DNA of 64,000 nucleotides from Chlorokybus atmophyticus (Eukaryota > Plantae > Mesostigma and Chlorokybus algae): the NCBI GenBank assembly GCA_009103225.1, contig RHPI01000003.1, positions 404,900 to 468,899 of the forward strand, in the 5' to 3' direction. Under the pieces are notes generated by a model. That model searched no databases, was not told where the DNA came from, and worked only from the letters and a program-made list of their open reading frames with translations. How positions within the stretch are numbered: the stretch's first letter is position 1; each line of letters starts with the position of its first letter. The translations under genes were made by a program, and so were the position numbers. Below, piece after piece: positions 8,621 to 63,300 of this stretch.

Positions 8621-8871
8621 TATACAACCAAATCCATGGTGAACAAGGCCTCCATGGCGCCAATAATGCCAACTTGCTTGTCGGTGGTGTTATTTGCAAC
8701 GGCATCTGCACATGTGGTTACATTGACAGCTCATGCGCGCCTTGATGGCCGCATGCCTTTATTGCGGCCCCACAAGTTCTACTTCCACTTGCAGCGAATC
8801 AATCGGTCACAAATGTCCGTATGCACAAGTCAAGAACCCCATCCAATGTGGGGGCATTGACTAACACTCTC

Positions 8872-11800
8872 TCAGTTCAGCACGGACGAGAGGCTCACGA
8901 GGCTTGCTGCTCCCCCGCACACAAGCTGCGCCTCCGCCAACACAACCGAAGCTTGCCTGTACAGAACCTGCACACGAACACAGTATGACGAGTCGCAACT
9001 ACCACTTCAATAATGCGTAACTCAGAAGGACACTTTGGCAATATGCTCACCTCTAAGGGAGCTGCCGCGTGCTTGCCTTGTTGCTCTGTGGCAACAACAC
9101 GCTCATCAGTTAGGAAGTAAACACACACGTATTCAACTTCAATCAAGGGCATACATGACAAGAAAAGCTGGCCTTTTATCAACTCACTTAGCAGCGCGCT
9201 GTTTAAAGATGCGGCCACTTGCGCTCTTCGTGCCGGTTCCATCAAATAACCCATTGGACTTGTAGACGGGTCGCGATATGCTAACAGTGAGAACACATCC
9301 TAATGTCGACACAACACATAGATTAATCAACAACTTCTGTAACCTCATGCCTGACAGTATCACGTTGCTGCACTTGCATAGGCAATTCAATTGTCACACG
9401 CCAACCATGTGATATTGTATTGTACCTGTAGCATGTTTTGCCTGTCTGGAGAACTGGCGTCAGCTGCTGTGATGAGTTCTGTCCGCCCATACGACATTGT
9501 GGCCTCATCATCTCCTATCCGCACCTGTGATACAACCACAACACAACAACCTCACCATCAGGTGTGCTTGGTGCATGCAAGCTTGTACATGATACAGCGT
9601 AACAGGCTGGGCCGGGGATGTAACAACTATGTGATGTGAATGTGCCCCTGACCCACTTACCATCTCAATGAACTTTTGGCACCTCATCTCAAAAGCCAAC
9701 GCCGGGTTGGCCTCAAACACCTGCTTACGCAATGCCAACACGTTGTGCAAATACTCAATGAATAGGGGACAAGTAACACATATATTACATCAACAATGGT
9801 TATGAGTTGAGCGAACGAGGGTGTTACTTGAGGTGCCGTTGACACGGAGAGCGACATGGCGTCGTCTATTCTACCATCCAACACTGCATCTGTGATAACT
9901 GAAGAGACAAAAACGAGACAATATCAGTAACCAATCCCCACCCAACACTACAAGCAGCAACATGTCATGTTGCTGCCTTGAGAGTTGTTTAACCGTATGC
10001 AGCTTTCCATGTTTCATGTTTTATGTCACCTTTGCGCTGCTGCATGCCGTTGATGTCGGCTTCGGGCAGCGTGCACGCGTCCGCGAGGCACTCTCGCGCG
10101 ACGGCGGTGGCGGTCTTGCAGTACCCGTGATGGCTCAGGTACGACACAATCTGCGGCCGATCAACGTCGCGTGTGATACACAATAGCTGTGGTTGTCTAT
10201 GTCTGTGCGTGCATAGCTGTCTGTGCGACTACGTGTAGACTGATGGGAATGGCGCGTGCATGCGGTGGCATGGACATGTGATATGTGCGCACATGTCCAG
10301 ACATGGGGTCTCGCGCACACACACACATGCGAAAATTGCACACGCATGAAAAAGCTGCTCACGCGTGCATGCACAGACACAACTGCACACATGCACATGG
10401 AGGCACACGCTTACCAACGTGTTGAGTAGGGCTTCCTGATTGGGCAGTTGTATTGCAGCTATCCGTTGCAGCACTTTCCTTTTCGCTTCCTTATGGTGTA
10501 CCAAAGATTAAACAATATTAATACAATAGTCTCATGCGGAGATGACGTACTAGCAACAATGACATGGAATGCATGCTCACCTTCTGATAACCGTCATAAT
10601 CAAATACAAACGGCTCCGCACCAAAGTTGGCTTCAATCTCTTCCCCTGTACATACACAAAAGCGAGTCCAAAAGCTAAGGTCAGGTGAGGCCATCATGCA
10701 TGCAACCAACACTCAATGCACAACATCGCATGATGCATAGCGCGTCACAACTCACCTGGAGCTCGCATACCCACAGTAGGATACAACACACCTGCAGGGA
10801 GTGCAAGTTTACCAGCTCAACAGGAGAGAGTACATGCCTACATACACACTTGGTCATGAACACACGTGAATGTGTGTTCATGACTATGTGTACATCACTA
10901 TGAACATACTTGAATGTGTGTTCACGTGTGTTCATGACTACACATGAACACACAATGATCAGACATCGCACTGCAACGCACCTTTCACGCTCGTGAAGGC
11001 CACGCCGAGATGAATGCCGTTCTTCGTGTACGAAATAGTCGACTCGATCTGCGCAAGATGATGTGGGGTTAGTTATTGGGATGTGTGTCTGATGTTTGTT
11101 ACACCCACATTGACAACGTCACCTGGTCGAATATGCAACCGATGACGTCTCCGGTCCCGAAAGTGGGCCCGTAAGCAACGCCCGTCCCACTGGAATGCAC
11201 ATAGTGAGACATGAGAGCACAACACACATTGTGGAAACAACATAACGGGCACATACACACATCATGTAAGACGCGCATGTGCAATGCAGCCAGTAGTACC
11301 TGCTGCTGAAAGCTTTGCCGTCGTCACCGTGATAACCGTACGACTGCTTTTCCCAACCTGCACGATATCCATAGTTTTGAGTGACAGAGCGAGCATTGAC
11401 AACTAACATGCGCGCACGTACATACATTCATACATGCGCATGCACACAAACGTGCATGCCAAGATTTAGCATAAGATCATGGTGAACAACCTGGCAATCG
11501 CTTTAGTGAGACGTTGCCCGCTGAGAGCCCGATGCCAATATACCTGCAGCAACACCACATCAAGACGACAGCGTTATAGGGACACCAGACTTTCAGCAAT
11601 ATGTTGGCTAACGTGCAATGCCATGATGTTGTTGTGTCCCCCCTACCCTTGATGGCCCTTGTTTACGATCTTGACTTCAAAGTAGAACGTCCCTGAAGTC
11701 TCGGGCACGGGATGGTTGGCTCTTACGGCCGCCGCATCCGAATCCCCGTTCTTCCCCTGACCTGGACACACGTTTTGTTGTTGTTTGTACGTGTACTTGT

Positions 11801-56459: not shown

Positions 56460-56870
56460 NNNNNNNNNNNNNNNNNNNNNNNNNNNNNNNNNNNNNNNNN
56501 NNNNNNNNNNNNNNNNNNNNNNNNNNNNNNNNNNNNNNNNNNNNNNNNNNNNNNNNNNNNNNNNNNNNNNNNNNNNNNNNNNNNNNNNNNNNNNNNNNNN
56601 NNNNNNNNNNNNNNNNNNNNNNNNNNNNNNNNNNNNNNNNNNNNNNNNNNNNNNNNNNNNNNNNNNNNNNNNNNNNNNNNNNNNNNNNNNNNNNNNNNNN
56701 NNNNNNNNNNNNNNNNNNNNNNNNNNNNNNNNNNNNNNNNNNNNNNNNNNNNNNNNNNNNNNNNNNNNNNNNNNNNNNNNNNNNNNNNNNNNNNNNNNNN
56801 NNNNNNNNNNNNNNNNNNNNNNNNNNNNNNNNNNNNNNNNNNNNNNNNNNNNNNNNNNNNNNNNNNNNNN
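56460..56870. other. Assembly gap (N run) flanked by poly-G
   Basis: 411 N with G runs on both sides. Confidence 0.99.
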
Positions 56871-57326
56871 NGGGAGGGGGGGGGGGGGGTCGACTTGTTG
56901 GAAAGCTACTTGAAAAAGCAGCAACCGTTTTGCAACATAAATACCTGTAGAGGCATCTCAATGACCCAAGAACGATTTTGTGCATTGCAGAGTTTTGCAC
57001 GAACTCAGCGAGCGATCTGGGGCAAAGGACACAACAGTACATAGGTAGGAGGGGTCATAATACTTCAGGGTTGACTACTACAAAGTCCCAAAACCAAGTG
57101 GGATACACATACGGGATAATAGATAGGCAGTTATAGCTAGGTAGGGTTTGCTTTTTGTAACCGGCCAAGCTAGTGTGCCCCACGAGAAAACCACGTATGG
57201 TGCAGATCAGACCTTTGTTGCGGGCTGTGCTGCACCAGACTCCAACATATTCCTACAGCATCAAACTGTACAGCACTGCACTCAGTACAATAAGCCCCGT
57301 TGCCCCCCACAACCACAAAATCAATG

Positions 57327-60300: not shown

Positions 60301-63300
60301 GAGTCACCGGTAAAGGCTCAAGGGCGCACTCAGACTGGAATAGGTCGCAAACAAGCGAATTCCAGTAGTCGAGGCATACCTGAAGTGTCAAGCCAAATCC
60401 ATGTCTGTACATACATACAACTGTAGCATTGCTGCGAGCCGTCTCAGGCACAGGCTCACCTTGAAGACTTCAGTGTCTTCAATATACGATAAGCCAAGCA
60501 GGTACTCAAGGCCAGCAAGTAATGCCTGCTGGTTTTCTGAGGTGACCTCCAGCAAACCAATGTGAACCTGCAAGAAACGGATGCACTAAGGATACCAAAT
60601 CAAGGATAGTCGCATGCGTTACCAACAAAAGCTCAAGATCCAGTACCTTGAAGTAACTTGTAAAAAAGAGAGCCAAGTTTTGCAGGAAAGCCTGCCAAAA
60701 TATACCCACACTGTCAACCACAACTCAGTGTGCCCTTCTGTTAGCTACTATGCCCGAAAGCATTGCACAAAGTGTACCCAGACATGAATACAACCTACTG
60801 GATGATTTCGTGATAAGTGAAAAACCGACTGTACAACATGTTAGTCGCATGCTCCCATCATACCGGCACATAGCTGAAGTGACATGACCCTTGACCTAAT
60901 TCAGCCATCAGTCGAACTATGCCTTGAGAAACCACCACATGCAGCAAAGGCTGCTCTGGGTCTCATGAAAAATATCATCACATGGCTGATGTGAAATGAC
61001 CCTACACATAATACACGTGGCCCATCAGTCGAACTATGCCTTGAGAAACCACCACATGCAGCAAAGGCTGCTCTGGACCTCATGTAAAGTATCGTCACAT
61101 GGCTCATGTGATATGACCCTACACATAACACACGTGGCCCATCAGTCGAACTATGCCTTGAGAAACCACCACATGCAGCAAAGGCTGCTCTGGAACTCGT
61201 GAAAAGCATCATCACATGGCTCAAGTGACATGACCCTACACCTATGCGTGGCCCATCAGTCGAACTATGCCTTGAGAAACCACCACATGCAGCAAAGCTG
61301 CTCTGGATCTCGTGAAAAGCATCATCATGGGGCTCACTACTCATCAGCAGTAATTATCAAAAGCACTGGAAATGCAACTGCTAATGCATGCTATGGTGAA
61401 ATATGCTCACATATGTCACAAAAGCCGACTGAAAAACTTGCCTGTTCCTCATTGGTGCCATTCTGGTACGCTTCCGGAATGTTGACACCTGGAGGCAAGA
61501 TGACCTACACAACCAAGAGACAAGTGGTGTTTATACAACGCGTGTTCACACTTTGACAGCAAAGACACCTGCCGATGATGCACGCAACACAGAAACACCC
61601 CATCTTTACAACACTCGTACCTGCAGCTGGCTCACAGTCACAGTATATAATTTTACAAAATGCACATCATAATACTGTCCAACACTGAGTGCAGCAATCT
61701 GCACAAAACAAAATGTCACCTTGTCTGGCCAGCAGAGCATCCCTCACGCACAATGCAAAACAGTTGTTGACGTTAACCTGTAGAAGAATCACGCATCAAC
61801 ACCTCACCTCCGTCAGGCACTGCAATGTAACGTTGCGAAATGACGGATTTGGGAACAGCTTCAACAGCGTGTCCAGCTGCAGTACAATCACAATTGAGCC
61901 CACATGCAAAGCAGAAAACCAAGTCAAGCTGTCATCTGGAGCACTTACCAGATTTCGCTCAAAGATATACCCCAAAGGTATCCATGACAAAAAGGCGTGC
62001 AGTGTTGTGAGTGTAGTTCGCACAAGCTCAGCTCGTGTGGAGTGCGCCAAAACAAACTCACACAGCTCATGAATGTTCATGAACTCACTGCCAAGACACA
62101 ATGCTCAGCCACTTGAGCTCCCACATTGACAGTGGCAGTCAATTGCGAACTTACTTGTTGAGAGTATTTTTCAACTCTTTGATTTTGGCCTGCGTCATTT
62201 CTCCTCTTGAGAAATCAAAGACCTCTTCACTCAACAACTGGCATGCACGTCCACAGTCAGATTATGTCGACACAATGCTGATGTGAGGTTATGACAATGC
62301 AAAGCTTTGCGCCCAACCTTGAGGATAATCATGCAGTTTTCGCAGAGCGTTTCACTGCTCTTTGCTGCCCCAACAAGATCGGGAATGAAGCTTTGCCATC
62401 GTGCTGGCCACTCATGTTTCAAAACCTGTTTCAACAAAACAACGTCTGAGCCTGTGCAAATGGACATGTACAAGACTGCCTGGTGTTTTTGATGACTGAC
62501 CTGCACCAAGATCACATTGAGTTTGTTGATGAACACGCGTTCCCTCCTGAATGTCGCCTCATCTGAAGAGAGCTGGAGAAAAGCAGCATTGGTGTGTTGC
62601 TTACAGCAGTTCCTCAAAGCGCATACCACCAAATCACAAGCATGCAGGTACCTTGATAATTAGGTTTGATATGTAGTTTTTGATGCCATCGCGCTGTTCT
62701 ACTGGGAGAGCGTTCCATCGATATTTTATGGCACCTTCCAAGATCTGTGCATAGTTGATTGGCATGTACACAACCGGTTTGTATTGTTAAAGCAAGGAGC
62801 TACGAGCTGTGCGACATTTAGTCCAACTCACCTGCAGCGCAAAGTACTTCGAGTTTTGACTGTGAGAGCCCTCAAGAATGGCATCAACTCGTGTCCATGC
62901 ATCTGGGTGCTCTTGTAGCTGGCGAAGAACCTTTTCTGCAGCTACCCTCTGCGGAAACATGACAAACGCTAAGTCTTGCATGGCAGGCTAGGATTACTAA
63001 AGGTTTGCAACAAAACCAACGAGCAGGATGAGAACCCTGGCATGCGGATATGCCGCGGTACCAGCACAAAATGGTGCTGTTGCCAAATGCTGCTCTTCAA
63101 GCACATGTTACCAGGTGTAGTGCTCGATGCACTCCGTCATTAGTTACATGAAAGCGCCTCATGACCAATGCGCAAAACCACTCTCAAAACCCTGCTCGGT
63201 AAGACTTGGTAAGACTGCTACAGAGCTTGTTACGACATGTGTAGCGCACAAATCGCACCAGTGGGCAGCCCAGCTACAGATTTACAACGCTAACATGCAG

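Follow-up and report, generated by a model that had tools for sequence, protein, structure and literature searches.

The 64,000-nucleotide (nt) stretch of the Chlorokybus atmophyticus genome analysed here (contig RHPI01000003.1, positions 404,900 to 468,899; hereafter the window, whose own numbering is used throughout) carries on its minus strand a gene for exportin-1, one intron of which harbors a tandem array of four putative genes for box C/D small nucleolar RNAs (snoRNAs). The open reading frame (ORF) pieces found around the array on this strand match the Pfam entries Xpo1, CRM1_repeat_2, CRM1_repeat_3 and CRM1_C, which identifies the host gene as CRM1/exportin-1 (XPO1). At least some of the units are very likely working box C/D snoRNAs that direct methylation of a conserved adenosine of 25S ribosomal RNA (rRNA), the equivalent of A826 in Arabidopsis and of A817 in yeast. 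The array would add four unannotated guide-RNA genes, with a likely target named, to the genome of C. atmophyticus.

The array and its host intron

The host intron (60692-61441, minus strand) is 750 nt long, lies in phase 0 after the codons for ...NEEQ and has GC-AG borders (GCAAGU...GGCAG). It separates an upstream XPO1 exon (61442-61504, minus strand) from a downstream micro-exon of 45 nt (60647-60691, minus strand). In a 3768-nt contig assembled from RNA run X1 (depth 125) the exons are continuous, and three introns, the snoRNA-bearing one among them, are missing from the 1151 nt compared; their borders were placed with a permitted shift of 2 nt. The complete array is thus carried in sense orientation by XPO1 transcripts of RNA polymerase II, inside one intron that is spliced out, which is the arrangement of an intronic polycistronic snoRNA cluster. 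The spliced contig and the Pfam matches to CRM1 establish the minus-strand location in an XPO1 intron that the initial annotation, made from the letters of the window, had proposed. The neighboring XPO1 introns (60568-60646, 79 nt, and 61505-61620, 116 nt) both have GT-AG borders, unlike the snoRNA-bearing intron, which starts CAG/GCAAGU. Introns of the GC-AG type are a small minority and are often tied to regulated splicing.

Tandem Repeats Finder delimits the array at 60905-61327, with a period of 117, 3.6 copies, 92% matches and a score of 699, and this is the sole large tandem repeat of the 64-kb window. The four units, named A to D in the direction of XPO1 transcription, all possess C and D boxes (4 of 4), as expected of the box C/D class. 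The C box is the canonical UGAUGA in three of them (61327-61322, 61214-61209 and 60980-60975, minus strand) and UGACGA in copy C (61097-61092). The D boxes, all CUGA on the minus strand, are found at 61259-61256, 61145-61142, 61028-61025 and 60911-60908, separated by 114, 117 and 117 nt, and the span from C to D is 72 nt in unit A and 73 nt in units B, C and D. The order of the parts in between is common to all four units: a variable 16-nt segment, a D'-like CAGA, a GCAGC/GCUGC hairpin, a C'-like GUGGUGG and a final 20 nt ending in AGGCAUAGUUCGA, which abuts CUGA. All these elements of the initial description, spacings and spans included, were recovered. The D guide together with its D box (AGGCAUAGUUCGA-CUGA) occupies 61256-61272 in copy A and is repeated identically at 61142-61158, 61025-61041 and 60908-60924 in copies B, C and D (minus strand); these four exact matches compare with 0.10 expected from shuffled sequences. 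The 16-nt segment upstream of D', in turn, varies among the copies at 5-6 positions and for this reason probably guides nothing.

The predicted snoRNAs, all on the minus strand, extend over 61252-61337 (copy A), 61138-61220 (copy B), 61021-61103 (copy C) and 60901-60989 (copy D). Copy A, whose C box reads AUGAUGA with the preceding base, has a predicted 3' end at 61252 and is closed by the 7-bp terminal stem seen initially, interrupted by one bulge (-11.9 kcal/mol; 26 of 1000 shuffles are as good). The terminal stem of copy D is a perfect 7-bp helix (UCAGCCA/UGGCUGA; -11.7 kcal/mol; 1 of 1000 shuffles as good), and those of copies B and C are weak. On this basis copies A and D appear sound, and B and C perhaps less so. 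At its end the array runs into a partial fifth unit (60860-60903, minus strand), composed of spacer and a destroyed C-box region, which has 68-77% identity to the matching part of the other units (repeat family D4).

Some further features accompany the units. An extra UGAUGA (61341-61346, minus strand) that overlaps a CUGA (61347-61344) is present 13 nt upstream of the C box of copy A; it could be the remnant of an older unit or a chance occurrence. The spacers that follow copies B and C contain the palindrome CACGUG (61131-61136 and 61014-61019), where copy A has CACGCA, and in the precursor the first bases of the next C box can be masked by short hairpins, for example AUCACAUG/CAUGUGAU. A 147-codon open frame (60901-61344, minus strand) spans the whole repeat, and it stays open since the unit length is divisible by three and one frame has no stops. 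An ORF-based caller would report it, but it sits in a spliced-out intron, is not a gene and should not be called as one by annotators.

Guide conservation, predicted rRNA target and RNA evidence

Divergence between the copies is distributed very unevenly. In the alignment of the four units only 1 of the 55 columns of the block that extends from D' to D+3 is variable, versus 31 of 62 elsewhere (Fisher p 6e-10). This single column is a one-base indel in the hairpin loop, leaving 54 nt free of substitutions. Restricted to copies A-C, where homology of the flanks is clear, the alignment gives 1 of 55 versus 16 of 62 variable columns (p 1.5e-4). The longest run invariant across the four copies has 45 columns, matching the 45-nt identical block reported initially, and a run of this length was reached in none of 100000 shuffles of the variable columns. 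The evenly spread divergence expected of a neutral satellite is rejected by these column counts and shuffles. The simplest reading is that selection acts on the D'-to-D block, possibly aided by gene conversion.

The sequence of Arabidopsis 25S rRNA at positions 821-837 is GGUGAACUAUGCCUGAG (RiboMeth-seq table, PMC8053127 supplement). The guide forms 11 Watson-Crick pairs with G824-U834 of this rRNA, plus a G.U pair at U823; the duplex with 821-837 has a calculated energy of -21.4 kcal/mol and three more pairs are possible past a one-base bulge. On Arabidopsis 25S the units therefore have an antisense element of at least 10 nt that obeys the fifth-base rule, the fifth guide base upstream of box D standing opposite A826. 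This residue is methylated in Arabidopsis, with a MethScore of 0.96, and is assigned to U80/SnoR19.1 (PMC8053127). The same site is listed for Neurospora CD48, yeast snR60, Arabidopsis U80 and human U80/U77 (PMC2780460). Its number is A826 in Arabidopsis, A817 in yeast, A1521 in human and A704 in Ostreococcus. In yeast 25S, Gm805, Am807, Am817, Gm867, Am876, Um898 and Gm908 all fall on the right bases, and A817 is presumably the equivalent residue. The initial annotation had named this large subunit target and placed the A817 equivalent opposite the fifth base, and the Arabidopsis 25S sequence, its methylated A826 and the assignment to U80 agree with it. The invariant guide is thus predicted to pair with GAACUAUGCCU of 25S rRNA, the putative target being the second A of GGUGAAC; in C. 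atmophyticus itself the target sequence is expected to read GGUGAACUAUGCCUGA. The modification concerned is one of the 2'-O-methylations common to yeast, plants, human and a green alga. A literature search for a RiboMeth-seq map of Chlamydomonas found none.

RNA support for the units is real but thin. Run X1 has three small contigs inside the intron. In the first, of 56 nt, the 3'-terminal 30 nt of the snoRNA, up to CUGA-UGGG, lead into a run of 26 A. These 30 nt match copies A, B and C; each of the three continues with C in the genome, so that the A tail is not encoded there. The tail begins 4 nt after box D, so that the transcript ends at 61252 or at the equivalent position in B or C, and D+4 is where a box C/D particle would halt 3'-to-5' trimming. 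A 31-mer of the same run (depth 14.5), also common to A, B and C, has the same final G as the A-tailed contig. Green algae usually use UGUAA as poly(A) signal. Canonical cleavage and polyadenylation is an unlikely source of the tail, since the intron (60692-61441) lacks UGUAA and D+4 is precisely where the tail begins. In both Arabidopsis (PMC4140647) and yeast (PMC2593888, PMC11115967), the exosome is known to act on polyadenylated precursors of snoRNAs. A 195-nt contig of run X1 (60740-60934; depth 7.4, about 6% of exon depth) starts inside copy D. It stops at 60740, where a motif resembling a branch point, CUAAC (60744-60740), ends 48 nt before the 3' splice site. Its source may be the intron lariat or a precursor of copy D with a 3' extension, two origins between which contigs cannot discriminate.

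Function and origin of the array

We favor the interpretation, in which we have high confidence, that the array is an intronic polycistronic cluster in which four paralogous genes encode single-guide box C/D snoRNAs of about 82-90 nt. Local tandem duplication of a 117-bp unit, composed of the snoRNA and a spacer of about 35 nt, would have built it. In every unit the C/D kink-turn would recruit Snu13/15.5K, Nop56, Nop58 and fibrillarin, and endonucleolytic cuts in the spacers followed by exonucleolytic trimming would free the units from the intron. The A-tailed 3' end at D+4 may then represent an intermediate of exosome-linked trimming or decay. Pairing of the guide next to box D with GAACUAUGCCU would place fibrillarin for 2'-O-methylation of the A826 equivalent, and the presence of four copies could yield more snoRNA per host transcript. 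The single-guide snoRNA amplified in tandem that had been deduced initially gains support from the A-tailed contig, from the non-uniform divergence and from a 14-nt antisense element shared with Ostreococcus tauri.

Several observations weigh against this interpretation. A search of the whole window with Rfam at gathering score gave no match, and a permissive search (E up to 10) returned only weak hits to the archaeal sR42 (E 1-5, 12-14 bits versus a threshold of 38). The Rfam search suggested initially thus gave no family, and the units fall in neither snR60/Z15, nor SNORD77, nor any other curated snoRNA family. The same snoRNA was not found in XPO1 of another organism among the contigs compared. 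The target is deduced by conservation from Arabidopsis and Ostreococcus 25S rRNA. The RNA data are assembled contigs, blind to levels and to 5' ends; of the three small runs of one study that contain this stretch, all of them contigs, two yielded nothing. The depth of the contig with the A tail is no more than 3.6. The invariant block includes the hairpin and the C'-like box, parts that are usually free to drift in snoRNAs, and recent gene conversion could add to the invariant pattern. Finally, copies B and C deviate from the ideal anatomy: their terminal stems have about 3-5 bp and energies of -5.8 and -5.7 kcal/mol, which about 30% of shuffled flanks equal, and the C box of copy C is UGACGA.

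The latter features, together with the partial destroyed fifth unit at 60860-60903, are those expected if a true snoRNA had been amplified and the array were now decaying, with only A and/or D still giving stable ribonucleoprotein particles (snoRNPs) and B and C being dying pseudogenes. In kink-turn terms, UGACGA swaps the U.U pair of stem II for C.U, and copy C is possibly impaired. However, B and C still share an identical D'-to-D block with A and D, and both the A-tailed contig and the 31-mer match A, B and C only, not D. Short or absent terminal stems are, moreover, tolerated in many intronic snoRNAs. We regard decay of the array as rather unlikely. The equivalence of the four copies implied initially stands for the boxes and the guide, which all of them have, but not for the stems of B and C or the variant C box of copy C.

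A more radical alternative is that the repeat is a neutral satellite, derived from a snoRNA or resembling one, that yields no functional RNA. The lack of an Rfam match, the absence of an orthologous array from the other XPO1 genes compared and the 147-codon frame, as a by-product of the repeat, are compatible with it. It is nevertheless very improbable, since one 1-nt indel and no substitution is seen over 54 nt, and variation affects half of the columns elsewhere. The RNA 3' end at D+4 also argues against it, as does the fifth-base rule, which is kept at a site that carries the methyl group in Arabidopsis, is a predicted target in Ostreococcus and has been listed for homologues from fungi and human. 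Similarly, we give very little credence to a role of the array beyond that of a dosage device, either as source of longer RNAs with snoRNP ends, akin to sno-lncRNAs (long non-coding RNAs bounded by snoRNAs), or through snoRNP assembly that modulates removal of the weak GC-AG intron and links exportin-1 to ribosome production. The presence of several snoRNAs in one intron, its GC-AG borders and the 195-nt intron-derived contig would suit such a role. However, the spacers measure only about 35 nt, the spliced mRNA is dominant (depth 125) and only the layout points to an action in cis; no contig covers an inter-unit spacer, though contig gaps prove nothing. Exportin-1 exports ribosomal subunits. 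If snoRNP assembly did tune splicing, this protein would be coupled in cis to the capacity for rRNA modification.

The amplification that we favor for the origin of the four guide-RNA genes seems to be younger than the intron position. Of the seven XPO1 contigs compared, three (L015, L017 and L019) end short of the EEQ/AF part of the gene. Two environmental relatives, L014 (about 8690-8790) and L016 (about 2700-2800), whose exons are 83-92% identical, have no intron at EEQ/AF and no guide motif. In L018 the motif search did not locate the EEQ/AF region and the guide motif was not found. The XPO1A-like gene of Miscanthus (L020) has an intron at the same phase-0 position EEQ/AF and the same 45-nt micro-exon; this intron (9580-9682) is 103 nt long, of the GT-AG type, and contains no snoRNA. 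The position shared with a grass indicates that the intron is old and the array a lineage-specific addition; the locus neatly illustrates how tandem duplication can multiply a snoRNA within an old intron. A word search of a protein collection with one XPO1 exon gave no match above 92% identity, and both C. atmophyticus and its close relatives therefore seem absent from that collection. A scan of metagenome contigs for the succession of C box, gap, guide and D box returned 13 loci without terminal stems and no relative. These loci look like chance matches; they lie apparently in coding DNA and some are copies of each other.

An imperfect 21-nt direct repeat (61420-61440 and 60820-60840, 17 of 21 positions identical, 600 nt apart) brackets the array, with one copy at the extreme 5' end of the intron. 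Without the bracketed segment the intron would measure about 150 nt, similar to its neighbors (79 and 116 nt) and to the Miscanthus intron (103 nt). The repeat is either an insertion footprint or a chance occurrence, for which a rough estimate gives 0.03-0.1. A remote possibility is that one insertion brought a segment of about 580 nt, flanked by this repeat, into an ancestral intron of about 150 nt; such an event would imply the existence of mobile snoRNA clusters. Elsewhere in the window, an assembly gap (56460-56871) consists of 412 N between G and C homopolymer runs.

Comparison with known snoRNA systems

The predicted units are, in function, the counterpart of SNORD77, of O. tauri Ot-CDsno106 and of the A817 half of snR60/U80, while their sequence belongs to no curated family. 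Arabidopsis U80/SnoR19.1, yeast snR60 and human SNORD80/SNORD77 guide modification of the same conserved A (A826, A1521 in human, A817 in yeast). snR60 and U80 are dual guides that act also on G908/G917, whereas in the array units the only conserved guide is the one at D. The stretch before D', which would hold the second guide, differs among the four copies and, judged by eye, does not seem complementary to the yeast G908 region. No Rfam model, those of the snR60/Z15 and SNORD77 families included, scores the units. In Neurospora the A site is served by a D' guide (PMC2780460), and here by the D guide.

A close parallel is Ot-CDsno106, a green-lineage box C/D snoRNA that is assigned to 25S.A704 and listed as a SNORD77/snR60 homologue (PMC7671301 supplement). 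Its 14-nt antisense element, UCAAGGCAUAGUUC, is identical to that of the array units and is directed at the same rRNA residue. The element is located just after box C, upstream of D', in Ot-CDsno106, and upstream of the terminal D box in the array units; the comparison concerns the guide. Ot-CDsno106 carries the snR60-type guide only, the G908-type guide being on the separate Ot-CDsno8 (25S.G794). A single-guide snoRNA for the A817-type site is thus no novelty in the green lineage. Nearly every Ostreococcus snoRNA exists as a single copy, in contrast to the four tandem copies found here.

The layout had initially been called striking, a qualification that the green lineage does not sustain. 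Arabidopsis has intronic clusters of three isoforms, for instance snoR155a/b/c in an RPL23A intron, snoR79a/b/c and snoR100a/b/c (PMC2875012), and a report on Chlamydomonas and plants presents their snoRNAs as mostly multigene families in polycistronic clusters born by duplication (PMC7671301). The array shares with these clusters the locally duplicated isoforms, the location in one intron, the sense orientation and the release from a polycistronic precursor that we propose. It differs from them by its host, exportin-1 instead of a ribosomal-protein or translation gene, by its four copies with identical guide and by the GC-AG intron. The array is a sound new annotation that brings no surprise and leaves snoRNA biology as known unchanged. 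Its layout is ordinary for the green lineage, and the exportin-1 host is a small curiosity rather than a new principle.

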